The translations under genes were made by a program, and so were the position numbers. Of a stretch of DNA of 37,717 nt, positions 340 through 37,717 are shown in pieces (position 1 is the stretch's first letter; every line of letters starts with the position of its first letter). The stretch comes from Lenisia limosa (Eukaryota; Protista; Breviatea). The notes beneath the pieces were generated by a model. The model was not told the origin of the DNA. It saw nothing but the letters and a program-made list of their open reading frames with translations, and made no database searches. The stretch lies in contig LPNZ01010503.1 in NCBI GenBank assembly GCA_001655205.1, positions 1 through 37,717 of the forward strand, written 5' to 3'.

Positions 340-3300
340 ATGGAGAAGAAGGACAACTCTCGTCACCTTGGTAAGATCAGAGAATATTCTTCTTTCACAC
401 TCTTCTTCCGATCTTATGTGTTACCGAAATGTAGGAGTGGCATTTGGCCTGATTCTACTGTCCCTTATTCTTGGTTTCCGGACCTTTGTACAAGGCTTCT
501 TCAATGTCCACATCATCCCGTCCGAGCAACTGGCCGTGGACTTCCTCCCTGTGATTCCCGGTACTAATGTTTCAGACGTGGGGGGAGTGTTCAGTCAGGT
601 TTCTTTTTAAACTTCTATTCTGCCTCAACCCTACTTCTTATCCTGTATGGGTGGTGGTTTAATTGAGGATTCTCCGACCAGGGTACTTGCGCCATTATTT
701 TTTTTAAAAAAAAAATTGTTTGATACAAGGGAAACAAATACATGAGGACCATATGTCGGGGAAGCGTCTTGAAGCATTTTGGGGGCCCCTCTCTGAGGAG
801 GTACAGGGGCCAGCCTTCTTCAACGGCAACTGCCGTCATGGTCACTTAAACCGCCGCCAACTCAACAGCCACCAAAGTGTAAGAAAATATGACCTCTGGC
901 GACCTGAAATCTCAATCCTCCCACCCGAGGAACCTACACTTGTGGAACTGAATATCGAATAGTTTTAAATAATTTAAATCATTTGTGAACAATCCCTCAC
1001 CAGCAGATCATGTGGAGGGACATTCTCGGACACGATTCGTGAGATAAAGAGGTACTGCGCATAGAGACGGGGACAGTGGCACGGGCATATGGCGATCTTG
1101 ATGACGAAGGAACAGAATGAAACTTATTCGAAAAATATTCTCTACAAATGTCACAGAAACACAGAAACCAATTTTTCAAACATACGTGATTAAAACCCAA
1201 GAAATTGGATATATCCAGTTAAAGTCATCTGGAGTTAAAAAAAAAAAGTAAACAAAACCCTTACTTTGAAAAAAGGGGGTCTAAAAGCTCTAAAAGCCAT
1301 CAAAATCCCAATCATTAATAATCTCAGCTTGAACTTCTTCATGATTGCGATGATGATAGTCGTCATTGGCATGGCCATCTCTTAAAGCACCGTGTAGTGA
1401 GAGTTGTTCAAACACTTCTTGATTGAGAATTGTTCCAAACGATGATTCGACGAGCCACATATCAAACTCAAGAATGAAGCATCGAGTCGTAGGAACACCA
1501 GGTCTGAAGTCGAGAAAAACAGCAATAGAAGTGACATCTGAAGCACTTCTCTTAACTTTGCCCCTTATTGGGGTGGACTGGAAGGACAGACAACTATTGG
1601 CTGAAAGGAATCGCTGGATTATTGCTTTTTACTGTGGCTAAACTGTAATAAGAATAATAGCCTACAGAAAGATGTAAATACACCTGGGTTAAACCACCCA
1701 TTTTCCCCCTTCATGTACCTTTTCTTCTCTTCATGAACATCTTCATTTGTTTTATTGCGTACTTGTTCATTGTTCACTCTACCGCGGAAATGCGAACTCA
1801 GTTCTTGTTCATTTGTGTTCTCAATTCTCTGAATAGACATCACCCACCACCTTCATTGATTCGTCGTCACGTTTACCCTTTACACTAGTATCCACCTTGT
1901 CACATCTTTATTGTACTCTCACCCGCCCAGCCCATAACACCTTCCTACTCGCGGTCAATTCTCATGCTTGTCGATGCTGGAAGGGCCGACTTTACCCTGT
2001 CTTCACTGAAGGGCCTTGATTGCGATGAAAGGTGTTGGGGTGCTTAACTTAAATAGTTACAGCTGCAGCTCTGGATTTTCAGACAAACTATTTGATACCA
2101 TGATTTACTCCCGTCAGCACGGACAACGCACGGCACCCGAGTATTGACATGCCCTTCACGCACAACCTGCTCTGTTCCGGTGCCGCAAGAGGCCACGTGG
2201 CACGTGCACGTACCCCAACAGTGACACTGCCCAGAATTAAGGTATGGCTCTACAGCAGAGAAGAAGAATGAATAGTATTCAGAACACGTTGAAACAGCAA
2301 TAATTGGCTCAATATTATGTACAAATGAGCTACTATTATGAAGAATCTCTTCTCTGTTACTTCGGATCATCCCAGCCTGTTGCTAAATACCCTGAAATTG
2401 ATGTTTGGGACATCCGATTTTGCATTGCACTTTTTACCTCCAGGCAATGATGGGAGGCGTGGTACCGTCCTTCACAGACCTGGTTGTCAACCTTGCTGCT
2501 TCTGGCATGTCCGAAGAGGCCATCCCCACGCTCATGGCGCGGCAGAACCGGACGTGTGTCTTCCATGGCGATGACACCGTGGGAATGCGGGAGCAAAATA
2601 ATGCAACTATGGAGGGAAACTAATTTTAAGTTGGATCATCAGAATGAGGTGCTGACACTTGTTCACAATTTAGTGGGACAAGCTCTTTCCTGGTTCATTC
2701 GACCCCCGATCAAAGCCCACGTCGTCATTTTTTGTAACGGTAAGAGGGTCAGCATTAAACGGATGGAGTTTAACAAATAAGCGTATTGTTGTTCTTGGAT
2801 CCAAGTGAATCACTCCATGGATGTTAACCCCCCAGGACACAGTGACTGTGGACTCCAATGTGACTCGCCATATTCCAAACGAAATGGAGCACTTTGACTT
2901 TGGCATGCTTGTGCTGCACTATCTTGGTGTCGACCATATCGGCCATCTTGAGGGTCCCGACGGGCCAAGAATGGCTCCAAAGCTCCGCGAAATGGTTGGC
3001 CTCAGTTTCCAGTCAAAGGTGACATTGTAGGATGGCATCTTCCAGCAACTCGTTGAGGGAGCAGAGGCGTTTGACTCTAAGGTGGGGGATGCTCACTGGC
3101 AATATTGTTTTCTTCCATTGTGTCGCTGTCTAATGAGCAGTCTGGGGAGCTGCCAACTCTTGTCATCATGGCGTCCGATCATGGTAGGCTCCAATTCTGT
3201 CAGTACCGATCATAGTAATATTTTATCTACAACTTGTGGGCTCTTACACGTTTGGGTTGTTTTTGTTTTTGTGTTTTTGTCATCTGGCTTTTGTCTAGTT

Positions 3301-6300
3301 TTAGCGTTGGTTGCTCGTTCTTCATCGAAATTTCCTTCGTTTTACTCCCCCCTCCCAGGAATGTCAGATATGGGCAACCATGGAGGCAGCTCCGAGCCTG
3401 AAACTGCTGCTTTCATGATCCATTGGTGCGTGAACCCATTTGATTTGTTACTATGATAATTAGATATTGTCCTCATTGTTTATGATCACCCCTCAGGTCC
3501 AAAAAGTCTGCTGAGCAGATGCTGCCGCCCGGAGATGAGGAAGTGCCGCAGGTGAGTTCAGTTCCGGTGGAATATCTAAATATGAGACTATAATCAAATA
3601 TTGACATTATGGTGTGGACGACTACCATATATACAACCTTTTTACCATTTCTACAAACTACATAACTGCAAATGACCCAGCAGGGTAGTTTGGCTTCAGG
3701 CCTCTCCGCAGCCCTCGGCCTTCCGATCCCCTCAGCCAACACCGTGTCCATACCAAGGAGCATCATCCGCCTCTTGCCGCCCAGCCACGCCTTGAGGGCT
3801 CTTCAGGTTCGCTTGATCAGCCCTTTCTAGAGGCAACCGAAAATATCTCTTCTTTCAACATATCATATACTATATATATGTATGATCCCAATGATGATAC
3901 TATTGTCCATATTGAAGATGTTGTGAAGAAGAGTTATTGAGTATGTGCTATTAATGCCATATTCTTGTCTCACACTGGCAGCTGAACAACCATCAGCTCC
4001 TTCGCCTGCTCAAAATCTCATCCCCAGAAAACTGTGGGTCGTGATGCAAAATATTGTTACGCAATCCACTTGAGGACCCAATTTCAATGGAAATTTCATT
4101 GCGAACTGAAGTTTACTCAGATGTTCAACATATAAATGCTCTGATTCTTAGTATTCCATAACCGCCACCCCCCTCAGATGAGACCCATACAGAAGCGTTG
4201 AAGAAAGCTGAAGACAAACATGCCTCATGGAACAAAGAGCCCTCAGATGAATGTTGGCGCTCATCCTGGTTATATTGATATTGGCACTTTATATTCCTTC
4301 AATGCTTTTGTTTCAGTCCTTCACTTTAGCCTACAACTGACCACTACAGCATTCAATAAGGCTTGCGATGCGTACTACAAGTCTATGGAACCCATTTGTG
4401 AATCCCTTTCAGGTTGGCCTTAGTTTCGGCTTTATCCCGTGTTTACTTTTAAGCCCAAAAGAGCAGCCTCTTGATTGTGCCGCTTTTCTCCGGTCTCTTA
4501 TCAATGCTCTTCGCAGTAGTTGCGGCGGTTATTGCTGCGGCCGGCCTCATGGAATCGGAAGTGCGTTGATTAGTTGGATCTTTATAAACCTTGGGGCTTG
4601 ATGTTACCCTCACTATGCAGTTGTCGGTGTGTACCTTCGGCGTCAATGGACTGTTGACCGTTCTGGCTGGCGTGGCCTGTGAAGTAACTCGCATTCTCCT
4701 CATTGACAGTGATGATACCCTCTCCAGTGGGTGGGGACCGTGCTTATGCTAATCAGTATCCTTTGTAAGTGTGATGGTGGAGGCCACGTTACTATTTTGC
4801 CTCAGCTTTAATTCGCTTACGAGAGCAGTGTTAAGCCTGTCCCTTGGTATGATGGCCATGGTTGTACCCGTCATGGAGTATTCCCTGTCTCCAACCACCT
4901 TTTGGCGAATGCCGAATGAAATCAAATCCAACTTTGTAGGCTCGAAGGATGGTAATATACTTTGGATAAATGTGCAATGCATGATACATACTTTTCTAGC
5001 CCCATCCTTATAGTGTGATTAATTCTGTGTACCTTGCACCACCCCACAGAACCACTTTATTATACTAACAGACATCATTCATTACATCTTCAACGGTGGT
5101 CATCTTACCCCCCTCCCCCAGTTGACCATTATCTGCGTGGTGTCATTCTTGATGTACACTGGATCCCTTGGAAGCAGCAGCTTTGTAGAGGAGGAGCACC
5201 AAATGGCTTACTTCATGTCCACTACCGTCATCATTGTCATTTCCCTCAACTATTTCTCGAGTGAGCCCAATGTCAATGGGCTGCATTTCCTACGGAAAGA
5301 TGACTGACCCCCCCCCCCCCNNNNNNNNNNNNNNNNNNNNNNNNNNNNNNNNNNNNNNNNNNNNNNNNNNNNNNNNNNNNNNNNNNNNNNNNNNNNNNNN
5401 NNNNNNNNNNNNNNNNNNNNNNNNNNNNNNNNNNNNNNNNGATTTTGTAACCCCCTTTTGACATTGGTTTTGTGATTTGTTTTATCCATCTGATCAATTT
5501 CTTTTGGTTCCTGTGTTTTGAAATGTTTTGTTAACAGAAATGATTTTAAGTTTTTGTTTGTTTCATAAGTTCTCCCTTTCCAACAGGCTCATGAACCAAA
5601 CCGGAGACAAGTGGCTTGGAGCGCCAGACTTCTCATCGTTCCTCCTTGGGTCCGAAATGGAATCGACACTGCAACGTCTTCTCATTATTGCCACCTACGT
5701 GCCTGCCTTTTTGAGTGTGCTCTGCAGTGTGACCGGTGCAGGATTGTCGCTCTTTGTTGCTGTCCCCTTGGCAGCCATGAGCGCTTTCGTGTCTTCGGAT
5801 CTTCCGCTATGCTGGTTTGCAGAGTTGTCAAGAGCTTTCCATCTTGGTCTCAGATCCAGTCACAACCCCTTTACGTATTTAGGGCTTCGTCTGAGAACTG
5901 CTGGGAAAGTCTCAAAGTGATAGTCTCTTTGTTAGCCCTTTCTGCCTGCTTGGCTTTCTTCAAAAAGAACAAAGTAAGATACACACTACTCCTTTATTCT
6001 TGTCACTCACCTACCAGATGACTTACCTCGGATTCACCATTGCCTGTCTTCGTCTTCTTGCCCTTTACCACAAGCCGAGTGTGTTGGGGGGAGCTCTATC
6101 ATCTTGGCAGATACCGCCATATTTCTGCTCATCTGATGTGATACATTCTTATCATTTGTTTGACGCCTTTCAGCGAATGCAGTGCTGCTTATCTTCATTA
6201 TGGGTCCCTTGGCGATCCTGGCTGCTAAGCAGGTCATTAAAACTAAAAGGTGACTCAGGGTTCCTGTCATTAACAGTTCTTCTGTCTGTTAACTTTTCTA

Positions 6301-6967
6301 GTTTGATTATTGTGTTTATGTGCAGCCCATTAGGCCAATTGTAATAATTCAGTTCGCCGATAGTGATAATCACAGTCTTTTGGTGGTTGTCAAGAGCGTC
6401 ATACTTCTTCATTGGTACGTCTGATCTTACTTTGCAATTATCTCCTTTCTGCGAATGAAAAATGCAAATCAAGGCTTTTTGAGATTATGCCCCTCACCAC
6501 CCCAGGTAACTCAAACTCTATATCTCGCCTCGACTTCTCTGGTGCGTATTTGGGCATCGACGACTTCAACGTCTTTGCGGTCGCTATGTGGGGGACTGGT
6601 TTGACGTGTCCCTTCACACCGGCTAGCTACATTCTTATGATGCCCATACGTTATATTTCGCGTTTAAACTAACACACACAGTCAGGGCCTGCTTCAAGTC
6701 TACAGCGGACCTATTCTCATAGCAATTGCTATATCGGGAGAGGTCTGCCACTTGCCTAATGGGGCGGTTCTCCTTGCTTTCGGCCTCATTGCCATCCGCA
6801 CAGTGGTGGCCTTGGTGTACAGTGTCATTCTTCTGGCTTGCAAGGATCATTTGTTTATTTGGAGCGTGTTTTCTCCGAAAATGGTTTTTGAGGGTGCAGA
6901 GATTTTGGTTCTTCTTGTCCAGCTTTTCATTATTTCTTTGGTCCAAGGTGTGTTTACCGGAAAGTAG
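340..6967 (+). CDS. PIGG: GPI ethanolamine phosphate transferase 2 (PIG-G/GPI7), multi-exon (about 25 exons)
   Basis: Manual splicing keeps frame: exons 340-370, 435-598, 1931-2031, 2118-2241, 2444-2578, 2674-2739, 2836-2994, 3031-3081, 3141-3183, 3359-3425 and onward. The product carries the family motifs ILMLVDAGR, PTVTLPRIKAMMGG, FHGDDTWDKLFP, SFFVTDTVTVDSNVTRH, LHYLGVDHIGH, SDHGMSDMGNHGGSS, LGLPIP, SSFVEEEHQ, NQTG, GNSNS and HLFIWSVFSPK. It ends at TAG 6965-6967. The gap at 5321-5440 probably hides an exon. Confidence 0.95.
842..1840 (-). CDS. Candidate spliced antisense gene nested in PIGG intron 2 (hypothetical protein)
   Basis: Three consecutive canonical minus-strand introns: 1264-1229 (GTAAGG...TTAACTCCAG), 1185-1142 (GTATGT...TTTGTAG) and 1000-948 (GTGAGG...ATTCAG). 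One frame stays open across them for about 97 codons (DFNWIYPISWVLITEYFSNKF...WRRFK*, TGA 842-844). A 113-codon open frame lies at about 1300-1640 and an ATG exon at 1840. No homology recognised, and the 5' exons are not cleanly joined. Confidence 0.4.
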
Positions 6968-7038
6968 CCTGTGGCCGGCTTGCTGTATTTAAATATATTT
7001 TCTACTGTTTCAACAAATGAGGTAGTCACAAAGCAACA

Positions 7039-13239: not shown

Positions 13240-16200
13240 TTATTTTACCACAACTACAAAAAGTTCTTCGAAAAGGACATTCTTGTAAAAGATGCCATAA
13301 GAAGTTAAATGGGGTGGTACTGTGTTGACAAACTGCATTCTACAAGTGTCAGATGACGGCCCTCTGAAGGAAAGAATCATACCATTACCGTCCCCTAAAA
13401 GGAGGGGTTGACTGGCTATCGTGACCTTTCTCGACGGTTTTGGTCGCGCCTGGTGCTTCGAACTGGGCAGGCGAGCCGCATGGCCATATTGGCATAAGGT
13501 CGCTTCCACCGCTGTTGAGTTAACCATGAAGACACCCACAAATTGCAATGCCCCTCATCCCCTCCTCACCAGGGGTATCGCTTTTATTTGACCAGTAGTC
13601 TGTAAACCCAATGTTCCGTTTTGAAGCCGGGGCCACCCCCGGGTTCCGGACAATGGTGTATGCCTTTTGCCATCTGAAGGGTCAGCCGTTAACCATATAT
13701 TTGCCACGTTCACACCTTTTACGCGCTTTCTGTGCCGGTGTTTTGTAGTCTGTTCGCACCTAAAATAAGATGTGAACAATAGAATAATAATATATATGAT
13801 ATCTATATATGATATGTAGAAATGAGAAAAAATTTTAAGGTATTAAAAATCAGCAAACCTGGCAAACATCTCGATGATGAAGGGCTTCTAAAAGGGTTAA
13901 TAGCAGGTGGGATAATCGGTTCTTTGGTGAAGAATGAAGATAATAAAAGATGTCTGCAACAATGGAGGGAAATGTGCAAACCTCTAAACAAGACGGCAGT
14001 GAGGGCAATGACAGCAGGGTGTGTGTAGCGGTGGTGCAGTGTCACAACTGCCATGACTGAAGGGTCAGTCATTTCCTTCGTTTCCATTGTTATGTGGGAT
14101 AGTGATAGGATAATATCGGCAAAACTTCTCCATACATATTTTGAACCCAGCATCGAAGGCAACAGTAGCATCGTCTGATGTAGCGGCAAATGCCTTGGTA
14201 ATGTCCATTCGCGGGAATCGGAAGAAGAACTGCAACTATTAGCCTGGGTTGAAACCATGAGGCTTCAAGAATCAAGTATTGTTCACGAATCGCTGGTCAC
14301 AAGAAAGCAAACCTTGCTAAGCCCAAGGATGAAGGTCACAATTGCGGTCATAAGCCCGCCAAGGGTGTTGAAGAAGACACCAATATAATCAACAAGGACG
14401 TATGCCTGGAAGCTGGGGGGGGGGGTGATTTCCCAATCATTAATCTGATAGGAAAGCACAGTTCTCCAAAGCATGTTCACCCCTCCAAAAATTCTTCTGT
14501 TATAGATCTTGAACTAAACCCAAGCACCCCACCCCCTAACTATCGGACGCGTTCATGGCCGTCACATAAACAATACTTGCCGAATACCATCACAACAATT
14601 CGGTACAGTGCAGTACCCGATACTAAACAAGTTAGCGAAGATGAAATGAGCCCATGAACGAGAAAGTAGGATAAGCCCCTCCCTCCCACAAAGAAGGATA
14701 AGAACGTGTTTGGCATTGTTGAATGCCTGGCTAACGTAGTTGTCAGGTAGGAAGAGATATGCCAAAACAAGGCAAGTCAGAATGGTAAGGAGAAGTATCT
14801 AAAACAGTAACACAAATCCAATGTGACATATAGTTCAACTACAATACAAAATGTGATTGATGGTTATCGCTGCATCAAAGCTCACCTGAAAGATAACAAT
14901 TCGGGCAACTTGGTAGCCTGTGTACTTCATTGCAAGGTGCGGACCAAACGTGTCCCTTAGAAGTTAGGTGATTTGGCCACTTTGTCAAAGGGCTTCATTA
15001 TGATGCCAAGAATGCCTGTTTCTATACAACAGATACCCCACACTTCCCACCTGCTCCGGTACCAGTTCTGTCCCATTCGCAAGGCGAACGACTGTTAAGT
15101 GAGTCTCGGAAAACCAAAGAGGATACTGTAGTATTCAACCAGCATTCGCAAACCTTCCTCTTGAAGTTCCTGGCGACAAGCAGCCAGATAATGAGGGTGG
15201 ACGCCGTGACGGCGTAGAAGGCGATGGTGGTGGCAAAGTGGACGTTTCTCTGGAGGTCATCCATAAAGCCTGCTGCCTGGGACTGTGATTTCATTGCCAT
15301 GATTTGGATAACAACCAAATGATAGCATAGAAGTCCATGATTAAAACAAGATCCCCCTCACGTTGCCCTTGCCATTCTGCATGAACACCAGCATGACTTG
15401 AGAGTTGAGCGGCCGACCGCCCAATATGCTCGGTACTATACCGAAGACCTGTGGCCGGTAAGAACAATGCGGGGAGGAAAATAGAAAAAGAAAAAAAAGA
15501 AAAAAAAGAAAAAAAAGAAAAAAAAGAAAAAAAAGAAAAAAAAAGAAATGGCGAAGGAGAGGGAGAATCGAACTCCTGCCCATCACTGGACCAATGGCTT
15601 TGAAGGCCATCCCCCCGGCCACGGGGGCTCACTCCTTCAAAAAATATACCAGCTCGGATTATCTCTATATACTTTGGCGTTTCAAAAATGGTCGTTTTTA
15701 ACTGAATGTTTTTCGATAAACACATTTCCTGTCCTTTCAAAAGTACAAATTCCCACAACCCAATGCATCACGTGACCCTCAAATGTCCCTCCTACACCCG
15801 TAAAAAGCTCTTCAGTTCTGCCAACCTCCCCCCCCTTTTTTTTAATTGTTCTTTTGTGTAGTCAACCGCTGGACCTCTATGATCTTAGTTTCAAGAGAGA
15901 CTTTACTGCAAAAAAGTTATTGTCCTTTTGTTTGCCTTTTGTTGTTTACTGCCTCCTTTTCAAACCGCCATGGTTTATATTTCCCTTATTTTGATGGTGC
16001 AACAAACATGTTTCACAGTAAGATAATAACGTTTTNNNNNNNNNNNNNNNNNNNNNNNNNNNNNNNNNNNNNNNNNNNNNNNNNNNNNNNNNNNNNNNNN
16101 NNNNNNNNNNNNNNNNNNNNNNNNNGTTGGCTGTCCCATTAATGACCTCAATGGTTGTGTCTGGGCAATCAGAGAACAGGCGATACTTTGATCAACAAAT

Positions 16201-19200
16201 GCCAATAAAGACTGGAGAAACATTGACCCCACCAATTGTGTTATAGTTGTCCAGAACAAACTCCTGCGATTGCAGAACAGTGTCAATAATTGTCATTTTG
16301 GATCTTTCGATCTGAATGTCGAACCACATCAAACCGCACATGATGAACATGTAAAATAATAGGGTAATCTAAAGCAGTCAGGAAAAGCTCATCCAGGGGT
16401 CACAGTACTATATTTTTTGGAGACATGCCAGGAGATACATATGGAAGAGCTAAATATTGCAATTCTCAGCATCATATTGAACAACCATTACGGTTCATAA
16501 AAAAGAGAGTAAAATTATCAACAATCAATGGGCTAATCAACAAAAAGAAGTTTCATGTGGGGAATGAATGGAATTATAACTTACCACAAGGGATATCACG
16601 GCAGTGTAAACGAATCTTTGGGGGTATTTGTAGCTGCTCGATGTGAACTAAATTATCAGTGTCATTGAAGAAAGGCCCTGGAAATTGGCATAATAAGCTA
16701 CAGACGATCCTCTTGTGTAATCTTTTAATACATGAGCTATGAGTCTGTATGAATCCACAATTTTCCCTCATATGATACCTCTCAAGGAGACAAAGTGCCA
16801 AAGGACACCCCTTACAAGCTGCTTGAGATTGCGTGGCTTGGTCCACAGCATGGACTTGACGGAAAGCTTGATAGACCACCATGTTGCTGTCAGGAATCGT
16901 GAGACTGCTGAGAGGTCGTGGAAAGGGTCCTGCTTTGTGACTCTCGGGTTCATTGCACAGAAATCATCATCATGCCCCCCCCCCCCCCCCCNNNNNNNNN
17001 NNNNNNNNNNNNNNNNNNNNNNNNNNNNNNNNNNNNNNNNNNNNNNNNNNNNNNNNNNNNNNNNNNNNNNNNNNNNNNNNNNNNNNNNNNNNNNNNNNNN
17101 NNNNNNNNNNNNNNNNNNNNNNNNNNNNNNNTCATCAGGCGATGTGGAGGAAAGGTTGAGCGTGTACAGAATTTGCCTGGGGGCGGGGTTATGCTGTCCA
17201 ATGTTGATTAGAAGACCGATGAAGAAAAGCCTATGCCACTCACGTTCTCAGCTTGGTGACATGAGTGATCTTGGCTGGCTGGGGGAGGGAGCAGAGGCTG
17301 CGAGCCGCAATAAGATGGTCCATTGGTAAGGCCACACGAGGGTCGCTGTAGCTTAGTAGGGCGTCCTATAGAGTCAGCTCAGCACGGACCTGTCCTACCC
17401 TTTCCCTCTTCACGGATTTGATGTTACGGTTTGAAGCCTCAGCAAGCATTGTTGTTGGGTACGTGCTCTGTTGCGTGAAAGATGTCCAAGCAGTGTAAAG
17501 TTGAAGGGGCTTTTCCCTTTTTGTGCGAAGCCATTGAACACATAGAAGAACAAAAGGACAATAACGCTACTTGTTATTTTTCATTTCCACATATTGATAC
17601 CAATCACAATCGAATGTTCAATTAGCTCTTCTGAGTATCTTTACCGCCCCCCCCGCACTTACCCTGCTGTTCTCACGGTACTTGGAATTCTGTAACGGTC
17701 AAAAGGGACAAAGTATTATTGAGGAGTTGGTTCGTATTGGTCAAGCAAAACAACAAGTTAGATTTGTCTCCTGTTGGAATGTATCGAAATCTTCTCATAA
17801 CTAAGCTAACCTCCATATCACCATCCTACCTTCCGGTCGCAATAGTAGGTCCATTGTGCAGCAGCGAGGAGGACAAGCATGGCAATGGAGGCCATGTACA
17901 CCAAGTCGTCCAACACCACAACAAAAATGTCTGACATGAAACTAAAAAGCATGAAAATCATCCAGTTATAGTGCAGGAGAGTGGCTGATTGTAGATATCG
18001 ATATATCATTTATTTGGCGTAAAAAACTCACTTGTCATGCGTGTAGATTACATAGAGCGAGTACATCTGCTTGAGAGCAACAAAAATAGCCACAGCAAAG
18101 ACAGCTAAAGTGTAAAATATGAGAGCATGTCATTTATTACCAGTTGAGGGTTTCATTGATCCGAATAAGTTTGAAGACATGTTCAAAATCTCATTAAAAA
18201 ACCGAAATGAAATTTTCGTTTCCTGAGGCCCACCAATAGAGTTACTTTTCAGGTTAGCCACATGTCCAACAAAGCCAAGAAGGGCTGAAAACAGCAGACG
18301 AATGGATATGTCATCTGGGGGTAAAAACCAGCTTTGGAGGGCATTCATATCAAAGAATTTGGTCAGTTGAGTGAATTGTTGAATACATTAAACGTATACA
18401 CATATGGTATAACAATGAAACACATCTTGAGAGGGTCCTACTTAGGGTACTTGCAACAGGGATATTGAGGTTTAGCACATTGACTGGGTGGGACAGTTCA
18501 GACTCTATTCCCGCCACTGTAAACCTGAAAGTTTAATTTCATATGAATACTTCTGTAGGTCTTACCTGAATTTGTAGACTCCACTTCCACCACTTTGCAA
18601 ACTAAACCAGTAAACCTTCCATCAAGCTATTCATCTTCTGTTGCTATTCACCCTGGTCCGAAAAAGGTGGGTAGAAAGCTGAAATAGCCGAGAATATAAT
18701 CTTGACCATGTCTTCAACTCCCCCAGCCCACTGGAGATTGCTGAACGTGAAAACCCCGTCATCATCGGACACCAGGCTATCAAATACGATCCTCACTGCA
18801 GCCTTCTTAAATTCTCCATCGCTGTTCTGAGGGGTCAATACACCCAGTGCCACACCTCCTTATAGGCTTGAACACTGATGTCCCAGTTTTTCTGGATCAG
18901 ATCGAGTGCAGCTCGAGGCTTCTTCTTCTTAATCGTGTCAAAGTCGTAAATAATCTAAACAGTGAGGTTGAAGACAAATCAAATCCATAATATTTATGAT
19001 TATAAATGAACTAGGGCTGCAGACCTGAACGATTGGCTGAATCATGTTGGGGTCAATCGCTTCGCTATTGGATACGTAGCTCTATACAGTGAGGGGAAAC
19101 GTTCTTGTACGGGCGATGTCAGATACCATAAAACAATAATAAATAGTGTCCAACATACAATAGTTCCTTCTTTAACACGGGGTTGCGTTGTGATGTTGAC

Positions 19201-22200
19201 GCTTTTAATGGGGTTGAGTAGCTTGAATGATTTTGATCTAAAGATTGAGGGGCGAAATCTCTTATGATTCTTATTGTTGTGTTTGTTAAAAAGAAAATTT
19301 GTAAAATTTATTTCAGAAATTAATTATACATTAATATTTGCAATTAGTTCAAAATTAAATTTGTCAATTAATATTCTCCAAAATAATATCACGAACAGTT
19401 CTTTTGGATTGTTCCAGAACAAATATAATAAATTCCAAAAACTTCCAGAACATTGGGGTTTTCGAGTTGATTGTTTTTCAAAACAAAAATAAGATAAACG
19501 TTCTGTATTTCTGATTGGTTTATTGCCTGTTCAGAATGAAAGGGGGCAAATGGTGACAGTTAACCAATAACAACAATATTGTTGAAAATGAACTGATTGA
19601 AATAATTTTAAATTAATTTCGAAAAAATTATAAATTAATTTCTCCAAAAAAAAAAAAAATTAATACAATTGAAAAGATTAATTCAAAGAATTAATTGGAC
19701 CGACTTCTAAAAATTTGATTGTTTTCAATAGTTATTAGGTTAGCAATCAAAACGGTTTTTTGATAAAGGGTCTTACTGGGTTGATGTTCGGGTGCTGTCA
19801 ATTGCCAAATAGTACTGACCTACTCCGTCAGTGAAGAGTCCAAATAAGAGATGAAAGAAGACTGCCAAGGCCCACCCGTGTTGCCAGAAGTGAATTGAAA
19901 TGGCGTTGCGACTGTGGCAACTACTGTTCGAGTGGACAGATTGGCAAACGTTCCAACTGGTGCAGTCAGTGTAGTATGGAGGAAGGCAATTCAGAGGGCA
20001 AACAAATAAGGAAGATTCATCATTCCTCAATTGGCATGGGCAAATAGGTTCCTCTGTTTTTTCATACGTTTCTTGGAATCTCGACAGATCTATAATCGAT
20101 AAGTAAGCAAGGGAGGTTACAACACATCAAACACTCATTATCCCAGCCCACTGCAATACACTGCTCGGGATTCTGCATGGAGTTCAGTGGGTCTAAATGG
20201 TCACAGAATTTCAACATATACACTGTAAATAAACTTGTTCAGTGTATACAATGCAATATGTCGTCTGAATTGCTCTAAACCAGATTGGTCTATTGTGACC
20301 CCTCATGCCTGAGAAGTCAAAGTTCTGTCGCGATAAGCAGTCCAGGCAGCCCTATGTAGTAAGCGTCCATTATTTGAACAATATGATATGTTTTTGGACA
20401 AAAGTCCTTATCATTGCTTAGACACATTGCTGACCGCTGATCTTTGGACGACAGGATGGGCGGATACTCGGAGGACTTCGGTGTAGGACGGAACCCCATT
20501 GGACTGCCAGGTGAGACTCAAAAAGAGTGTCAACATGTTGTTAGTAAACATAATACAATCCCACCATTTTGCCTGTGATTTTGAGGAACGGTTCTGGCAG
20601 TCCGACCACGAAGACATTCGAGGGACCTGAAGAGTGAAGGCAGAGACCCTCAACGTACCAGTGGACGACTGTGGTGACGTGTTCTGCAGGGAGTCGGCTG
20701 AGGACTAAAGAGGTTAGGGAAGGGGAAATGTGATGGAGAATTCTGTGAACACAAAACACCCTCGCCAGCTTACTCGGACTTCTAAAGTGACGTAACTGTC
20801 GCCAATCATGGAGTTTTTGATATGCGCATGCTTGAAGGCAACCTGATATGACCGTTCCAAGAAGCTAGTGCTGAACAGAGTCGGCATGCTCGTTTTCGTC
20901 ACCCCGCTCTCATCGAGCATTCCAAACGCCATGCCCATAATGGCTGCGGAGATGGTTAAGTCCCTTAATGGATTCTATTAGCGAAGGAAGAATACCCTTA
21001 GCCCACCATTCTCAGGGGCAGACTGCGCCTCAGCGTTAATTGAAATGTATGAGAGTGAGATGCTTTCCTCCAGGCAGGTTTGGCCTACAGTTTGGATCAG
21101 AAGGGGCTTGAAATACCTTGTTCGTCTTTGCAAATCGTCTCAAATGACGCAAGTTTGGGGAAGGGGACCATTGGCGGTGCAGGTCTAGGCTTGTCAATGG
21201 AATATTAATAGCAGAGCTTTGCTACCTTTTATTATCGTACTAGCGATAAAATGTCACAGCTTACCCAGAAGGAATCTTGGTAATGGCACTGATCAAACGC
21301 GATTTGGCAACAATTTGCTCTGTTGTTGGAATGCAGTCCTTCTTGAAAGCTATACACAGTTCCAGGGTATACTAAGCAATCAGATGAAGCAATTTTTTTA
21401 GCTTTTCAAAAGACGATTACCGCCCGTCCAGCAATACAGAGTACCTCAATACTATCGACATTTTATGAGTCTCACCGTTTCGCCAAGGTTAAAAGGATCC
21501 TGGATTGAGTACAAATTGACAGTGGCGGTTGGGTCGAGGAAGTCTGTCATGAGAAAGCCCGAAATGGACGCCACGTCGGAGGCGTCGTTGATGTTGATGA
21601 ACCGCATCTGGGGCATTAAAGGAGTACAGGTTGGCGATGAAATGCACATGTGCTTACAAGAACAGGGGAAGAAATCGAAAGCACTTGCGACGTGTTCAAA
21701 CTCAACTGCGGTAAGACTCCTGTAATACTGAGTTACATACCAACAGACGCCCAAAGCAAATATGTCACTTGATTCCGAATTGGCCCACCACAAACCTTCC
21801 AAATACGGTAACACGGATGTACTATTCTCTGGCATTTCCTTAAAGAGTTATAGCGAGAAGACATACTAATCATATACAACTTGCCCCCTCCTCACGAATT
21901 CATAACTCGTAAATTCAAGATCTGTGTGATCTTCGAACTCAAAGACAAACGTCCTAGATCAGGATTACAGTTACCGGGTTAGACAAAAGAATACTTAGTG
22001 TGTTTGTACTCAGTTAGCACACTGAATGGGAAACAACACACAAACAAATGAAAGTACAAATGATACAGCATATAATATTAATCATCTCATTGATGTATAC
22101 ATACATATCTATATGCTATGAAAAACACACATCTACCAATGTGATCAATATTTATTATTTTGTGCATTTTCTACACGGCTTTGCCTTACAATCCGATCCA

Positions 22201-25200
22201 GTCGACAACAAAAGAGAGGTGCAGGTTTCCCGGGGATCCTTGCTCCTGTGTGAAACCAAAAGATGCGGTAGAGTTGTGTGTTCTGATATCCACATTTATG
22301 TCCGGAGAATCAGATCTAGACGGTTGAGACTATCGGAAAAGATACACTCAGAAGAACGATTTCAGAATAGTGGTGCAGTTATCACTTACAATCCTATTGA
22401 TCTGCGCAAAATAGCTTACATTTGAGAATGGTATTTGGGCTCAAAAAGGGCGTCGGCAACCGTTATTTCAACTTCTTGTCCGTCTAACAATTAAAAAGAT
22501 TTGGGGCAAACCTGTTGTATTGAATATCATATCATATACTATCTATAATTTATTATGATGAAAGATGAACGCAAAATCAAACTCTTTTCTTGAGCCCACC
22601 ATCTTCGCGTTCCAGTTCAAACGGCAGCGTGGCTACGGTCCCGGTTGAAAAGGGCGTTGAGGGCTTCCGGATTTTATAACTATGCACTGACTGTTTCAAA
22701 GGCATCGTCTTGGTATCTACGGTATTAGAGGCAATGATAATTCAAAACGTGGAAAATGAACATTTTGGTAAACCCCCCGGAAAAGATTTCTTAAATTCAT
22801 TTCAGAAAATATACCACGATTCCAAGATTGTGTTATGCCGAGTCTTGAGCCCCAAACGCACAAAGATTGCTCAAAATGCCAACATCTGATCCGTCAAACT
22901 CCTTCTTCTCATGTACACTACAATGGTGACAAAAGTGGCATTTGAAAACGATGAACGGCGAAAAAGAGAATATTTCACGAGAGCTTCAATCCACGATTGA
23001 GCACTCCCGAAAGATTTTGAATATCCACTCTTTTGGAACAAAGGCGAAGCTCTACATTTTACAGTAGCGCTGAAGGCATTTCTCTAAGATGGAGGACAGA
23101 CACCCTTGGTAATTATCAGCCCCCCCCCCCCACCACGCAACAGNNNNNNNNNNNNNNNNNNNNNNNNNNNNNNNNNNNNNNNNNNNNNNNNNNNNNNNNN
23201 NNTACCAAAGTCCTCTGATAGGTTAATGTACGAAGGCCGAGTCTATGGTGAGAGTGGATTCCTTTTTCCAGTGAACCTCGTAAGTTTGTATGGATGAAAG
23301 TACCCACTCGTTTCAATAGGAAATATTCATAATTTATGCCAAAATATTCGTCTTTCTATCATCGTCAGAGCGGAAAAATTATTCCCTGCATACTTGAAGA
23401 TATGTGGGTTGAGAGCTCAGTAGCCTAGAGCAGTGAGGTACACTTGGACAAGAATGGTCATCACACAAAGAGGAGCTTACATTCAAAGGTTGACAGAAGA
23501 GTTTGAAGTACGTAATTGTCCAATCCCGAGGTTCGCTCTACATTCTTTACTTCCTACATTTAAAGGCCATGGATATTCAATACAGCACGGTACTATCTCA
23601 GATGGAGGGGCTAACGTCAGAAAACTTGACTGGGCTTGTACTAAGGAAGCGACTGAGGATACAGACTTCTGCTTCTCCCTCGGGGTCTGATTCGTTCAGA
23701 GTTGTCACCTGCATGGTGAGAGAAGTGATGCGATTAAGGAAAGATGGAGATATTGCAGAAAAAGACAAACAATCGAGAGTTGCGAACAATAGCAAACATT
23801 TATTTTGAAGCTAAAGTCCATGACCGATGTGAAGGCAATTGATGGGGACTCATCCTCAACAGTCATTGAATAAAAATTCCTGGGGATGTAAGGTCAACGA
23901 CAAACTGAAATGAGAACAGTTTTCTGTAAACAACACCCACGGCTTGGTACTGCGAGTCCTTTTGAAGGAAACTGCAACTTCCCGAGATTCTTGAACAACA
24001 TTTCCTCCAACGAGTGCCTGGAACTGAAGAAATAAAAATATCATTAGAATAGGTAACAACATTCAATCATCGAGGCCAACCTTTATCAGTGGCTCTTCAA
24101 GAAGCAACAAATCCGTGTACATTAGAGTAAACTCAACAATGGTGTCGCCCTAAAACCTTCAATTGACCCATAAAGAAACGTAAAATGCAGCAACATAAGG
24201 AAGATCTAAGATATGATTTCACCAATAACGTCCATACATATAATGAATCTTGTTGGAAGAAAACACCTTCAGGGGTCACAGCTTGCACAACAACTTCCGC
24301 AGCAGCATTTGTTGCAACTGGATGGTGAACATAGGACAGAATACTAAAGGCGGTTTCCCGAGAAATGTCATTACCCTCCCTCCTTATCTCAAATAAGCTT
24401 GAAATATATGGAACGTTAAGAAAGACCACTTGAAAAGGACAATAGACAAACCCTTTCCATTGACGATGGGAGTCACTGAAACCTGGATTGGGTCCGTCTG
24501 TGAAGTCAAAACTGAAGTAAGTACCGTACCAAATCGAAGACGTCCATACTGCATCTTGAACCATCCCTATAAGGCGACAGCAAAGAACATCCGTCAAGCC
24601 CAGTGATCCCCAAAGTGACGTCACTAACGGACGGAGCAATCGTCATGTCTATTCCCTAGTGAATCAGCCTTTAAAATAAACAACTCGCATATGTCATCAA
24701 ATGCATAAACCGTTTCAATATAACCCTGACATTTGAAGCAACACCTTCCGCGAAAACTTTCAGAATCACGTTTCCGGTGGCTCTGGGGGGGGGGGTTAGG
24801 ACAGGGCTAATACTGTTAATTGTTGATGCATCCAAACATACCCAGATTGAGTAACTTCGAGGTCTGTATGGACTTCTCCATTCTCGTCAGTTACCCACGT
24901 ACCGAAATTCTGAGCCAGTAAGGGGGAAAGTTGCATACAGATCTTTGGTTCACCCCACTGACTGTAATTTGCTTAAAGTACTTGGAAGGCGTCTGACTGA
25001 TGAAATAATCTTGGTTCACTCCATGAGGTGTGTCTAAAAATAATTTTTACAAAACCTAATTTAGAGCATCATTACTAGAAAGAGGACAATGTTGTAATCG
25101 GGCAATAAAAGAAACAGCTTACAGTAAGAGGCGAAGTCAAAGTATACCAAAGTGTTAGGCAAAGGAGTTCCAACAGCATTCGTTACCTGTATACCATTAA

Positions 25201-27568
25201 CGATGCACAGATCAATTGGAACGAAACATACAACAACTAGCCAAAACAGAAAAATTGCGCAGGTGGAGGAGTTGGCTAATTACGTACCTTCGCTGAAACG
25301 GAGAAGGGAGTAAGGCTTTTAATGACCTTTTTGTCGTGGAGGGTGAGTTTAATCTGTAAGTAAAAACACCAACCAACGAAATATACTCCAAAAAAGGATA
25401 TTTTGCCTGTCATGAAATGGGCAATTCTCCCTCCAAACCTGTTGTACCCTATGGGGGACTACATAAGGGGGAAGTTCAAAGATCTGCTTATCGGCTGTAT
25501 CAGCGGACAGCTCGCCAATAATTATTTTGACAGCCTGGTGGTGAGCGGGGAATATTCTGGCAGCTTAGCATCTTAAAAAGCAGGAAAGTATATTTCTTAG
25601 AACCTGATAAATCATTAATATGATATAATAAATAGCCTTTAGAATTATGTCGGTAGCTGAGCGCGCTCATCATATAATACTCTTCCCACAAATCGTGACG
25701 ACGCAGCACCACGGGGTATTGGGGCCAATTCAGCCATTCCATTCTTATCAGACACAGCAAATGAGTTATTGAGGGTGGCTAAAGTGGTAAAACCACAAAT
25801 CTCGGTTTCTTTGAGGCGTCATACCATAGTCTGGAATGCCCATCAGGAGGCTGGTTGCCGCTTCACTAAAGGCCTCCAAAGCAGAAACAGTAGCCCCTTC
25901 CAGTGGCTCTCCAAACGTGGTTCGGACTTGGACCTGCGAAGTTATCAGTCACTTGGGTTCTAACAGTAGGTTAGATCAATAACTTATCATAGATGATGTA
26001 TGACTAGCATAATATTATCATAAGTATGTGCGAATAGTACATACATAGTAGAAAAAAAAAAAAAAAAGCAANNNNNNNNNNNNNNNNNNNNNNNNNNNNN
26101 NNNNNNNNNNNNNNNNNNNNNNNNNNNNNNNNNNNNNNNNNTCTCAAACACATACTTTAATCGGGTCCATGGGTACATTGAAGCCATTAAACTTGCCATG
26201 GTCAAGAATCTCGATTTCGGCAGCTTGGGAGACTGAAGAATGAGAAGAGTTTAATAATGCTGTTTGTTAATTGTTTAAGTCCATTGACCATCTTTCAATT
26301 AATTGTTTAATTTTGAGCATTCAGAACAAACCTTGCTACAGTGCCCTTCACCCCATCTCTACCTAAACTAATTTCAAAAGTGGCACAAGGGAGATTGTCC
26401 TCGTTTTCATGAGGGACGGGCCGAACAGTCATTTCGTACACGCCGGACGTTCCGGACTTGAAGGAAAGATCGGGAAACTCAACAAACTACAGCATGACGA
26501 CAGTGGACAGAGCCCACCCCAATGTTGTCCGTTGTACGCCGGTTGCCTTCCATAAGGGGAACACAGAAGCTGTCCACTGAACTGGCCATTGAGGTGCCTT
26601 CTAGGCCTCCCACCAAGTCTGGATGTTAGGTTAGCTGTGGCCAGGTTTGGCTACATTTTCAATGTTACACATACGAAGAAATGACTATTTAATAATGATA
26701 CGCTCAGAGATTTTCAACAGCCCACTGCAAATGGGCTGGATCATGGCGGACCGCGCGGCCGTCAGTCTTGCCGTCACTTCAACCTCGCGGCTGGCCACCC
26801 CAAACCCCTCCGAGTTAAGCAGGAATCCCTGAGCGGGGTAAATCGGTCTGTTCGGTCCTGATGTCAACCTCAATCCTTAGCACAAGCCTCACCGAAAGTG
26901 GTAACGTGGCTCGTGTGATCTTGGATCCCAGAATGTGTTCACCTTTGGGCTTGATGGAGATGGACACCTGAGTGGTCACTTGAAACCAGTCCATTTCAGC
27001 GCCTAACCGACGATGGCGATGAAACGTCTCCCTTGGTCCTTGAGGGGTCGAAAATGAAGGGGGGAAGAACATCTGATAAAGTAACAAAAAAAATGAGTTT
27101 CATGCAGTAAAAACCAGAACTCTCTATACAATTCCTGTAATAGAGTCTACCAAATGGCATATTAACGGACCTAACAGACAGGGGAGATTCTATTATTTAA
27201 TTTAGGGAACAATGAGTATGAAGGAGGCTTGTCCAATTCCCCATGAAATGCCGTTCCCAATCCTTTGTTCTAAAGCATCCTGCAACCTTGCATGACGCTC
27301 AAGATGACCAGCAGGAAGAAGGCCACAGTCAACGGCCTGTTCAACACCCGCTCCGTCACAGTGTCGCATACCGGCTGAAGGGTTAGCAAGGGAACAAAAC
27401 TGCTGGTTTAGAAAAATGATAATAGACATTTATAGAAAAACTAAGCCATTTTGGATGATATTCTGTGAACAAAAGGAGATTTTCCATTGTTCATCTGAAG
27501 ACAGCAGAGGTGCAGCAAACCGGGTCAATAGGCAACTTGCTTGTCTTAAGATATCGTAACATTGTCAT
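13240..27568 (-). CDS. Giant STRA6-like (RBP_receptor family) multipass membrane protein with a roughly 1,400-aa Ig-like/beta-sandwich ectodomain; roughly 2,000 aa and more than 60 exons
   Basis: STRA6-family motifs occur in the expected order after splicing: YKYPQRFVYTAVISL (about 16590-16650), MKYTGYQVARI (about 14890-14930), FKIYNRRIFG (about 14480-14510), DYIGVFFNTLGGL, FFRFPRMD...FDAGFKIF...HRYTHPAVIAL (14020-14200) and QKARKRWQKAYTIVRNPG (13635-13730). Upstream exons continue without an evident gene break to a hydrophobic N-terminal segment (TVAFFLLVILSVMQG, about 27290-27340). Both ends are uncertain, and a few junctions were not resolved or lie in gaps. Confidence 0.85.
15490..15547 (-). 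repeat. 9-bp tandem repeat (TTTTTTTTC)n, about 6.5 copies; Pol III terminator T-runs and polypyrimidine tract
   Basis: GAAAAAAAA repeated on the + strand with G at 15490, 15499, 15508, 15517, 15526 and 15535. It begins immediately 3' of the tRNA-Sec CCA and precedes the acceptor at 15449. Confidence 0.85.
15549..15638 (-). tRNA. tRNA-Sec: tRNA-Sec (anticodon UCA), eukaryotic 9/4 fold, with genome-encoded CCA
   Basis: GAAGGAGTG-AG-CCCCCG/TGGC/CGGGGG-GATGGC/CTTCAAA/GCCATT-G-GTCCA/GTGA/TGGGC-A-GGAG/TTCGATT/CTCC-CTCTCCTTC-G-CCA. This gives a 9-bp acceptor stem (one U-U mismatch), a 6-bp D stem with 4-nt loop, a 6-bp anticodon stem with the CUUCAAA loop, a long variable arm, a 4-bp T stem and a G73 discriminator. 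Length is 87 nt plus CCA, followed by T-runs. Confidence 0.95.
15666..15671 (-). promoter_or_regulatory. TATA box of the tRNA-Sec gene (-33 to -28)
   Basis: TATATA(GAG) on the minus strand 28-33 nt upstream of tRNA G1. This matches the known external TATA-dependent Pol III promoter of tRNA-Sec genes. Confidence 0.6.
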
Positions 27569-34542: not shown

Positions 34543-34836
34543 AATGGCGTTGTTTAAGGCGAGGTAGAAGGGCTGGTGATGAAGTTAGGCGAACACAATG
34601 AAAATATACAGACAAGGGGCGGTGATTGAATTTTCTGATTCTCTTTTGATTCTCTCAACTAACTACAGTTGAACTACAGTTGTGTTCAGGTTAAACAGAC
34701 AAAGAAAAGGGATTAATCCACACAATTATATATTATTGTATACATACCCCAGAACAGACATTTTTTATAACCCAATTTTCAATTTTTCGGCCCTTATTCC
34801 ATTGTGTATAGGTTTAAACTTGCGCACTGTGACATA
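34543..34836. promoter_or_regulatory. Bidirectional promoter region between LSM1 and DDX56
   Basis: 294 bp separate the divergent ATGs. The region contains the direct repeats AACTACAGTTG x2 (34661-34682) and TGATTCTC x2 (about 34636-34654). Confidence 0.55.
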
Positions 34837-37717
34837 ATGGTACCAGATGTTAAGGGTAAAAAGGCGGCAAAGGGTGTCAAGGTTGACAAGAAAGCTAAGA
34901 AGAGACCCCAGCCTCAGAAGAAACAAAAGAAAGCACCTGAAGCAGAGGAACCCACAGGGATTGAAGATATTTTGACCTTTCCTGAGTTGAATCTTGATCC
35001 TCGCCTGCAGGTTAGCCGGTCCTGCTGTTGTATTTACCGCTGTTTAGAGCGCCATTGATACATTTGGCTTCAAAGAAACAACACCCATTCAAGGACAGGC
35101 TATTCCCCTCTCATTGGTTGGTGCTTCTTTTATGAATGACCCCCCCCTCTCTCTCTCTCTTTCTTCTTCAAATAGAGCCCAAGGATTTTTTTAATCGTAT
35201 TTTGGTCTGTAGCTTGTCCCTCACTATCATTATCAACCCAATGTGGTTGCATGTCACCACCATAATTGTCACCCGGTTTTGAAATAGCATCATTTAACCG
35301 ATAACCGTGGTAGTCTGGTCGCCATGTTCTCCTGAGAGCCCCCACGGGGTCGGGGAAGACCTTCGCATATCTCTTGCCGCTTCTCAACAGTCTTCTTTCA
35401 AAGGAAGACGAGGTTGGTTTGGACAAATAGGGGTCAGATAGTACCGGATTTTTCGTTGCTTTTGTTCATCACAATTTCCAGGTCAAATCTGGTGTCGGTG
35501 CAGTGATCCTTGTCCCCACCAAGTGGGCATCGAGTGGTCTTAACTTGTTTCGAGAATCGTTTTTTGTATCATCCGGATAGAAATAGCAACTTGGCTATCA
35601 ACCCTCACCATCATACGTAACCTAAAAACCATCATTATAGCCCTTATTCATATCCCCCCACAACCATCACACAACATCACACACCAAAGCCCTTATACAT
35701 GCGCATACCCCATCACCATCAGACAAATGCATTGAACCCACAAATACCATATACCTACCTACCCCCTCTCCTTTTGTTTGTTTGGAGATTATTCGTTACG
35801 TGATTTGTACCTTTACGTCAATATTCTTTATCTAAATATCCCCTAACCATCAGGGAGCTCTGTCACCAGGCTCGTGATGCCTGTAAGTCCCTGCTCAAGT
35901 TCTGCCCACAATGGATGACTGTCGCTGACCTTGCTTCACCTGAGGAACTTGCGGCTATGAGGTGGGGCATGTAGGATAGTTTGCTGGTTCATTTTGCTTA
36001 ATACCTTCTTGGCAAATCTGATATATCCTCACCCTTATAAATCTTTGATAATCCTTGATAAATCCCTGAAAAATCCTTGACAAATCCTTGATAAATCCTC
36101 ATCTTTGATGATTAATCCTCGGTATGGACGTTTTATGAGCCATTTGCTATTGGAGAAAATATATTTACATATTACAAAATGGTATTATTTGACAACCACA
36201 ATCGAATGCTTTTAGGCTTACGGAGCGTAAGAAAGAATGGCACAACTGTCATTATCGATAATATCTCCTTCGCTTGGGGAATGCATGTGATCCTGAGTGG
36301 TATAACGTCCACAGAGCCACAGCAGTCTCTACCCCCACCATCATCACTGCCACCCCCTCCGCCCTCCGCGCTCAACTCAAAGATCAGGTGGGTGGTATTG
36401 ACGGGGGCAGTTTATATTATAAAACAAAGAACTGAAATAAACAAGAAGACGAAACAATTGATTTCTGTATGGGGACACTGTTGCCATGCCCATGTTCTGT
36501 GTGACCACGCAGACCCTCTCCCTCCGCTCATCTCTCCGCTTCCTTGTTATTGACGAAGCCGATCTCATCATGACACACGGCTACGAGGAAGACCTCTATG
36601 GTTGGTGCGATAAGTATTTTCTCCCTTTTGCAAATTCGCAACAATCTCTGTTCTAACATCGGATAAAATCCACCCTAACTTCAACAGCCATTCACAAGGA
36701 CGTCCCCTCCCTCTGCCAAACTTTCCTGGTGTCAGCTACCCTCCCTGAGGTCTGGGGCCCTTTCTATGCTATATTCTGTCTTGGTGGAGTAAACACATTG
36801 TACAATGCTTGGACATGTAACCATTTTACCAGTCGCTTCATCCAACGTGAATGAGGACGATACATATTTGTCTTCCCACCCCAACTTACTCCTTTAGGAA
36901 GTTAAGGCTCTTCAAACGCTTGTTCTTAAGGACCCTGTGGGTTTTGGGCGAAGTTGGATTGGACTGGTATGTCCTTTGTTGTTTTTTTGCAACGTTATAG
37001 AGTTGAACCCCCAGAGAAGGGGAGTCTTGAGATTTCCATAGTGTTGATATTTTGAGGGTGTTCATGGAAATTGTGGAACAAAGCAACAGTTTAACAACTT
37101 TTAACTGTGTTCCTGTTTGAAAAAAAACTATATTGTTGACAAAAAACTAATTGTCCGAAGGTGACCGTATTTGTGAAGACCCGGACACGACATGCCAAAA
37201 AAGGCAAGTTACGCGAATCCGTCGTTAGATGCGGTGAAATCGAAAAGTACATCGTGGCCTATAGTGAGAGGGTGTCTTTTCTTTTGTGTGTCCGTGTGGT
37301 TTTTTTCTTTATTTGTGAAATACAGCAGAAATATCCAATTTTACTTCCCCCAGTTCTGTTCAAACTCAAGCATCTCCACGGCAAATCCCTGGTCTTTGTG
37401 GATACGGTGGATACCGCATACAGGTCTGGCAAGACACCGCATATGATAGTTATTACCACTGCCATTTATAGTTCAACGTCCCATTTCATTGTTTACATGA
37501 CATATTTCGCGTTTAACTCTTTAGATTCAAGTTGTTTTTGGATCGTTTCGCCGTCAAATCCGCAGTACTCACTGAGCTAATGCCGATGGACATGAGGTAA
37601 TTATGAGGGTGCCTTCTTTCTGTGTTGAAAATGGCCGAGTTTGGAGCTGCGCTGCTAATTGATAGCCCTATATATTGATAACGAAAACAAAAGCATCCCG
37701 CAACCCTTGTGTATTGC
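34837..37717 (+). CDS. DDX56: ATP-dependent DEAD-box RNA helicase DDX56/Dbp9 (60S biogenesis); 3'-truncated by the window end
   Basis: Q-motif FPELNLDPRL...FGFKETTPIQGQAIP, Walker A ARAPTGSGKTFAYLLP (about 35335-35380), AVILVPTKELCHQ, TATPS, LVIDEADLIMTHGYEEDL (DEAD at 36552), QTFLVSATL, and LFKLKHLHGKSLVFVDTVDTAYRFKLFLDRF, which is diagnostic for DDX56/Dbp9. The last exon identified ends at 37596. Confidence 0.93.
36037..36100 (+). repeat. Intronic minisatellite, about 6 imperfect copies of ATAAATCCTTG
   Basis: ATAAATCTTTG/ATAATCCTTG/ATAAATCCCTG/AAAAATCCTTG/ACAAATCCTTG/ATAAATCCTC in a DDX56 intron. Confidence 0.8.

Follow-up and report, generated by a model that had tools for sequence, protein, structure and literature searches.

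The stretch analysed here (the window) comprises the 37,717 nucleotides (nt) of contig LPNZ01010503.1 of Lenisia limosa (Breviatea; assembly GCA_001655205.1), a eukaryotic sequence with a GC percentage of ca. 42, in which exons and introns are very short. From position 27568 down to 13240, the minus strand carries dozens of small stop-free pieces, and a refined ab initio gene model joins them into 79 exons encoding 1,808 amino acids (aa), many of the small exons being uncertain. On balance, the locus is best read as one expressed multi-exon membrane protein of ca. 1,800-2,000 residues, consisting of a signal peptide or anchor, an ectodomain, three membrane helices (helices 1-3) and a C-terminal module of the STRA6 family, i.e. 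RBP_receptor of Pfam (PF14752). The features of this giant gene are, in order of transcription and with gaps filled by N referred to as N gaps:

27521..27568, minus strand: putative first coding exon with ATG at 27568-27566, 16 codons, and donor GTTTGC at 27520, placed from sequence and gene model.
27287..27374, minus strand: N-terminal hydrophobic exon (LTVAFFLLVILSVM), signal peptide or signal anchor; hydropathy 2.0 over 19 aa, splice sites present.
18442..27072, minus strand: ectodomain of about 50 short exons, ca. 1,130 aa in the model, containing the N gaps 26072-26141 and 23144-23202.
25825..25933, minus strand: exon beginning VQVRTTFGEPLEGATVS; sole Pfam match CarboxypepD_reg, below cut-off, and no Big_1.
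18442..18805, minus strand: last beta-type unit, in exons 18805-18732, 18601-18566 and 18524-18442, reading ...VSDDDGVFTFSNL / HLQSGGSGVYKF / RFTVAGIES...
18315..18441, minus strand: putative 127-nt intron between the last ectodomain exon and the first membrane-helix exon, GTAGGA...pyrimidine run-CAG.
17830..18314, minus strand: exons of membrane helices 1-3 at 18314-18141 (or -18234), 18104-18032 and 17941-17830, in frame with the ectodomain chain.
16648..17829, minus strand: poorly modelled, presumably cytosolic stretch, including the N gap 16992-17131.
16233..16647, minus strand: exons 16647-16585 and 16368-16233 with a membrane helix, aligned to profile positions 293-341; detectable RBP_receptor homology begins here.
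15283..16232, minus strand: loop region separating two helices of the STRA6-like part and containing a T-rich microsatellite, the N gap 16036-16125 and a selenocysteine tRNA (tRNA-Sec) gene; model exons unreliable.
15553..15638, minus strand: tRNA-Sec gene, anticodon TCA (ARAGORN; Rfam RF01852, 72.5 bits, E-value 3.9e-13).
13982..15282, minus strand: core RBP_receptor-like exons 15282-15154, 15091-15051, 14955-14886, 14798-14690, 14622-14588, 14513-14313, 14229-14136 and 14056-13982, aligned to profile positions 344 to ca. 565.
13570..13887, minus strand: cytosolic tail exons 13887-13859, 13759-13716 and 13673-13570, the last bearing ...KARKRWQKAYTIVRNPGV, which matches BP2.
13240..13569, minus strand: coding end with two options, either read-through that reaches the stop at 13522-13520 or a further two tiny exons ending in TAA at 13242-13240.

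The family of the C-terminal module was approached with a degenerate 38-base DNA pattern for W-x-x-A-Y-T-h-h-x-N-P-x-h, taken from window positions 13635-13672, as bait. The pattern occurred once in the window (0 expected) and at 89 loci in metagenome contigs (L001-L089; e.g. L005:2187-2264, L071 and L066). R or K directly preceded the W in 55 of the 89 loci, and in most of them the signature R-x-R-W-x-L-A-Y-T-L-x-x-N-P-x-L stood shortly before the end of the open reading frame (ORF); two were taken to resemble the ends of mammalian STRA6. All 18 long fished ORFs that were scanned belonged to RBP_receptor, with E-values from 6.7e-06 to 3.9e-109, and a hidden Markov model (HMM) without the motif matched 31 of the 49 loci having at least 60 aa of upstream ORF.

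A family HMM was built from 18 environmental ORFs; PF14752 was confirmed in each of the 16 that were checked. A search with this HMM covered the window in 1,803 six-frame pieces; the three best matches were all within the giant gene, and seven pieces (15357-13523) matched the profile in strand order, at positions 302-367, 393-423, 419-444, 488-525, 526-546, 547-562 and 603-624. The first splice model, which was built before the family was known, scored 92.2 bits (E-value 2e-30), and the refined model 95.8 bits (E-value 1.6e-31), with profile positions 293-624 corresponding to model residues 1375-1787 and window positions 16647-13570. Within this alignment the core exons 13982..15282 follow the profile with no rearrangement, and their counterpart in zebrafish STRA6 is at residues ca. 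353-560. The isolated C-terminal stretch scored 100.7 bits, against at most 4.4 bits in 490 scored shuffles and -2.6 bits for the reversed sequence. Because the family had been chosen by the motif, motif and tail were cut from both family and query, and the match still reached 67.5 bits (E-value 5.8e-23) with an hhalign probability of 97.4%, compared with 99.0% when the motif was kept.

At the level of sequence profiles, the homology of the ca. 410-residue C-terminal module to the RBP_receptor family is thus established, although the module is very divergent, with an identity to the family of ca. 20%. The first-pass annotation had assigned ca. 650 aa to STRA6/RBP_receptor; the assignment holds for the last ca. 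410 residues (16647-13570) and is not confirmed for the part from helices 1-3 (18314-17830) down to 16648, for which there was no profile match. No close relative appeared when all gene pieces were compared by tblastn with the 89 fished loci, the matches being confined to the motif exon and one weak match of the last membrane helix, and a search of the ESM Atlas with one exon returned nothing informative.

Exon 13673-13570 reads RWQKAYTIVRNPGV at 13673-13632, fitting the signature R-W-x-L-A-Y-T-L-x-x-N-P-x-L, and 10 of 20 positions of the window motif are identical to zebrafish STRA6 by hand count. One fished relative, L007, matched zebrafish STRA6 (5SY1) with an E-value of 1.1e-28, and its motif aligned weakly (E-value 0.48) to the 29-residue chain B peptide of 5K8Q, which is the complex of calmodulin with STRA6 BP2 (PMC10871162). 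Through this alignment the window motif corresponds to the BP2 calmodulin-binding helix, and the predicted end of the protein is a cytosolic helix of this type. The motif is conserved sharply enough that the 38-base degenerate pattern retrieved mostly RBP_receptor genes from the metagenomes, and of all features of the family it may be calmodulin binding that is conserved best.

Ahead of the module, the hydropathy plot of the model displayed one N-terminal hydrophobic segment, none for the following ca. 1,130 residues, and then a cluster of seven to eight. Three of these, an odd number, precede the cytosolic stretch, and two gaps may hide further segments. The STRA6 structure published in 2016 reportedly has nine membrane helices and one intramembrane helix, with the N-terminus outside and the C-terminus inside. 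The predicted layout of the window protein, i.e. N-terminal signal, helix-free stretch, helix cluster and cytosolic tail, is coherent with such an N-outside, C-inside orientation.

The ectodomain contains no membrane helix, is rich in S, T, V and I, and includes 10 Cys and nine N-glycosylation sequons. Its length in the ab initio model, ca. 1,130 residues, falls short of the ca. 1,400 aa first proposed. The peptide strings which had been quoted as Big_1-like signatures were all found in place on the minus strand (VQVRTTFGEPLEGATVS from 25933, VSDKNGMAEL at ca. 25755-25726, VTNAVGTPLPNTLVYF in exon 25186-25123, and VTDENGEV near 24894); the domain itself was not recovered, since 10 ectodomain pieces including all four quoted motifs gave no Big_1 (PF02369) match in Pfam at E≤1, a scan of low sensitivity because the pieces are short exons. 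CarboxypepD_reg (PF13620) matched 25769-25948 with an E-value of 0.12 and 13.2 bits against a cut-off of 32.3, and NOMO2 (PDB 9c7v_B) matched 18647-18859 weakly (E-value 0.53). Against PDB, piece 25825-25948 returned one unrelated weak match only, and pieces 25648-25818 and 24799-24972 returned none. Matches of 18647-18859 to designed armadillo repeats were rejected as repeat-inflated, at ca. 8 bits per repeat. By eye, we take the last unit (18442-18805) to resemble the D-x-x-G-x-F-x-F...G-x-Y pattern of CarboxypepD_reg/NOMO-type sandwiches, and the ectodomain is predicted to be a beta-rich stalk, probably of the sandwich type.

Several results count against one giant protein with a STRA6-family module. 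Pfam searches with 20 stop-free pieces returned nothing above threshold, and the search for RBP_receptor which the first-pass annotation had suggested gave no match on single exon pieces; likewise, STRA6 was not among the PDB matches by phmmer of four C-terminal exon pieces. The assignment to the family is accordingly based on the HMM and the spliced model built here. Exon 14565-14798 gave nothing in a word-based protein search and no similar database protein in an exhaustive phmmer search of 1.84 billion representatives, whose only match, the bacterial protein P0001, was repeat-inflated and found spurious on reading and by Pfam scan. In a pattern search of metagenomes with exon 14313-14513, 396 pattern matches were obtained and none was confirmed. 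The first half of the family profile was not matched by 18900-16650, no piece being better than E 23 and the hhalign probability being 0.1%. In the accepted divergent members L077, L087/P0002, P0003 and P0004, Pfam also covers the C-terminal half only, so the unmatched N-terminal half does not exclude the C-terminal module from the family. The exon junctions of the gene model are predictions from sequence, as is the ectodomain fold, and self-BLAST of the ectodomain revealed no internal repeats or periodicity. Moreover, the intron 18441-18315 holds a stop in the upstream frame (ca. 18352) and an ATG in the downstream frame (ca. 18347), and, with the STRA6-like part lying beyond the gap 16992-17131, it is the scaffold that connects this part to the ectodomain and to helices 1-3.

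That a single gene runs from the ectodomain through the STRA6-like part is nevertheless probable, if not proven. The block 17132-23143, which holds ectodomain exons together with helices 1-3, is free of gaps, and from 18601 to 17830 the exons form a chain that keeps the reading frame and has canonical splice sites. The putative 127-nt intron has a GC percentage of 37.8, against 47.6 in validated exons and 39.6 in the introns between them. Of the words sampled, the polyA RNA run X1 contained 22% for 13240-16035 and 8% for 17140-23139, shares that fit a spliced, 3′-biased transcript and do not prove a single one.

The alternative that survives best, although we regard it as unlikely, is that of two or more adjacent co-oriented genes, i.e. 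a secreted beta-rich protein ending at ca. 18352 or after helices 1-3, followed by a separate RBP_receptor-family protein. The unspliced frame of the last ectodomain exon does reach the stop at ca. 18352, and the ATG at ca. 18347 shares the reading frame of the first membrane-helix exon, but the two are only ca. 5 nt apart and the whole 127-nt segment is intron-like, with its GTAGGA donor, pyrimidine run and CAG acceptor, and low GC. A break after helix 3 would agree with the lack of family similarity in helices 1-3 and with the poorly modelled, gap-containing region 17829-16648; it would, however, leave a family member which starts at the helix of profile position 293 and has no N-terminal membrane domain, with only a gap of an estimated 140 nt to hide one. 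The odd number of helices ahead of the cytosolic stretch agrees with the topology of STRA6.

A scaffolding artefact, in which sequence blocks from different loci, e.g. paralogues, were placed on the two sides of at least one N gap and the giant gene is chimeric, appears improbable. The gene does contain four N gaps (26072-26141, 23144-23202, 16992-17131 and 16036-16125), all between model exons, and gaps of the window that abut C runs suggest low-quality contig ends. Every block, however, has the expected minus-strand coding sequence in the expected order, and across the gap 16036-16125 the profile is colinear (293-341 upstream and 344-624 downstream), a check which the other three gaps do not offer; a mis-join of paralogues would furthermore leave the architecture true for the family. 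As to the gaps themselves, several in the window (e.g. at 5321, 9472, 13009, 16992, 23144, 28473 and 30562) are flanked on one side by 11-17 consecutive C (or G), the gaps at long homopolymer C runs including two of the four in the gene, and one gap abuts an A run. The contig ends are apparently homopolymer, possibly an artefact of sequencing chemistry, and the bases beside the gaps are therefore untrustworthy.

Finally, that the STRA6 resemblance is a chance or compositional likeness in an unrelated multi-pass protein, for which the negative searches with single exon pieces and the low family identity might speak, is close to refuted by the shuffled and reversed controls, by the score remaining after removal of the motif from both sides, by the seven pieces colinear with the profile, and by the 92 bits already reached by the gene model that preceded the family.

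Some further features were recorded at the locus. The tRNA-Sec gene is located on the same strand as the giant gene, within an intron or the loop region of the STRA6-like part, and adjoins a (T)n-C microsatellite at ca. 15480-15545. Introns as short as 36 nt are apparently used on the minus strand (14445-14480 and 18105-18140), where alternative models differ by only ca. 3 bits. Two neighbouring genes on the plus strand were indicated by Pfam matches that were all sub-threshold and on single exon pieces: a glycosylphosphatidylinositol (GPI) ethanolamine-phosphate transferase-like gene at ca. 2800-7000 (PIGO_PIGG pieces with E-values 1e-4 and 8e-3, and a Phosphodiest piece with 0.09), and a DEAD-box helicase-like gene at ca. 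34800-37700 (DEAD piece with E-value 0.0066, containing VIDEAD).

Read as one membrane protein, the gene product would comprise four regions: a signal peptide or signal anchor; an extracellular beta-rich part of ca. 1,100-1,400 residues devoid of membrane helices; three membrane helices without a family match, followed by a cytosolic stretch; and a divergent PF14752 module of ca. 410 residues, ending in the BP2-type cytosolic helix. By analogy with STRA6, the C-terminal module may act on a small hydrophobic ligand at the membrane and be controlled by Ca2+/calmodulin, and the large outer domain may supply docking, capture or adhesion in cis, conceivably in place of a soluble carrier, as the first-pass annotation proposed. 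That BP2 is conserved next to a giant and completely different outer part suggests an ancestral core of two essential elements, calmodulin control and the C-terminal part in the membrane, to which exchangeable front ends for ligand capture could be attached.

More tentatively, the C-terminal module with BP2 could be an ancient portable eukaryotic unit that predates animals and RBP, and that in this flagellate lineage was joined to a giant capture or adhesion domain and expanded into paralogous hydrophobic-ligand receptor-transporters under Ca2+/calmodulin control. This possibility, which we hold to be doubtful at present, would if true indicate what the vitamin A receptor originally did. To our knowledge, work on STRA6 has been confined to its role as vitamin A receptor of vertebrates, and the literature yielded no paper dealing with STRA6 relatives outside the animals or with the giant-ectodomain architecture. 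Proteins of this kind in a unicellular organism offer a way to ask what the fold did before RBP4.

Compared with known systems, the giant ectodomain would make the window protein a new architectural variant of a known family. Vertebrate STRA6 has only a short N-terminal outer part; it is a dimer to which calmodulin is bound, and it extracts retinol from RBP for transport through the membrane. What the tightly bound calmodulin does has been called enigmatic (PMC5954442). The window protein shares with STRA6 the alignment of its C-terminal ca. 410 residues to the PF14752-family profile, a layout compatible with N-outside, C-inside, and an ordered series of motifs: L-R-x-G, GYQ-A, the last membrane helix with N-x-L-x-G-x-M-x-A, R-x-D-I/L-S/T, F-D-x-G-F/Y, H-P, and the BP2 helix (R-W-x-x-x-Y-T-h-V-x-N-P in both). 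It differs from the 670-aa STRA6 in the ca. 1,100-1,400 residues ahead of the membrane part and in an N-terminal membrane domain that is not recognisably related. The region matching the RBP4-binding loop of STRA6 is occupied by the gap 16036-16125 and the tRNA gene, and a vertebrate-type RBP4 carrier is presumably not to be expected in a unicellular host.

RBPR2/STRA6L belongs to the same Pfam family as STRA6. This second vertebrate RBP4 receptor is described as resembling STRA6 in its soluble C-terminal domain inside the cell and in a predicted 9-11 membrane helices (PMC11050646). With a mass of ca. 70 kDa, it differs from the window protein in having no large ectodomain. The ectodomain has a weak likeness to NOMO and to CarboxypepD_reg-type beta-sandwich arrays, as the strand motifs V-x-V-x-x-x-x-G-x-P-h-x-G-A-x-V and D-x-x-G-x-F-x-F-x-x-L recur in it; NOMO, a subunit of the BOS complex, is a protein of the endoplasmic reticulum with a single membrane helix. 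The window matches to both are sub-threshold, and no repeat periodicity was detected.

In the Atlas, the clusters retrieved with PF14752 were 580-830 aa in length, the exceptions being a 126-aa fragment cluster and a CCDC180-type cluster of 1,899 aa. A narrow database search found no giant-ectodomain RBP_receptor member and returned fusions with DOMON, cytochrome b561 and kinase; a 1,922-aa rotifer protein from the same search had three separate stretches matching PF14752 and no recognisable big ectodomain. One fished locus (L082:41-1078, plus strand) carried the RBP_receptor C-terminus with a BP2-type motif, followed by a weak PDZ match (E-value 6.4e-4, below cut-off).

The fusions provide a parallel in architecture. 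P0002/L087 (L087:93-3968, plus strand) joins cytochrome b561 to the RBP_receptor C-half, and its N-terminal part includes a match to DOMON, a beta-sandwich outer domain, below the Pfam cut-off; P0004, from EukProt, combines kinase, thioredoxin, cytochrome b561 and the C-half, and may be a merged gene model; and P0003 is a 909-aa MMETSP protein with the C-half. The cytochrome b561 fusions, of which no description was found, may represent a redox-linked use of the STRA6 core. Like the window protein, all three have only the C-half of PF14752 (from ca. 386-435 to the end), the same final motif and an unrelated N-terminal part, but their N-terminal modules are other ones, none has a helix-free outer domain of over 1,000 residues, and their pairwise scores with the window module are low (12-15 bits). 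In these proteins the RBP_receptor C-half behaves as a portable module, and since it is found behind varied N-terminal modules, its fusion to yet another front end in the giant gene is plausible.

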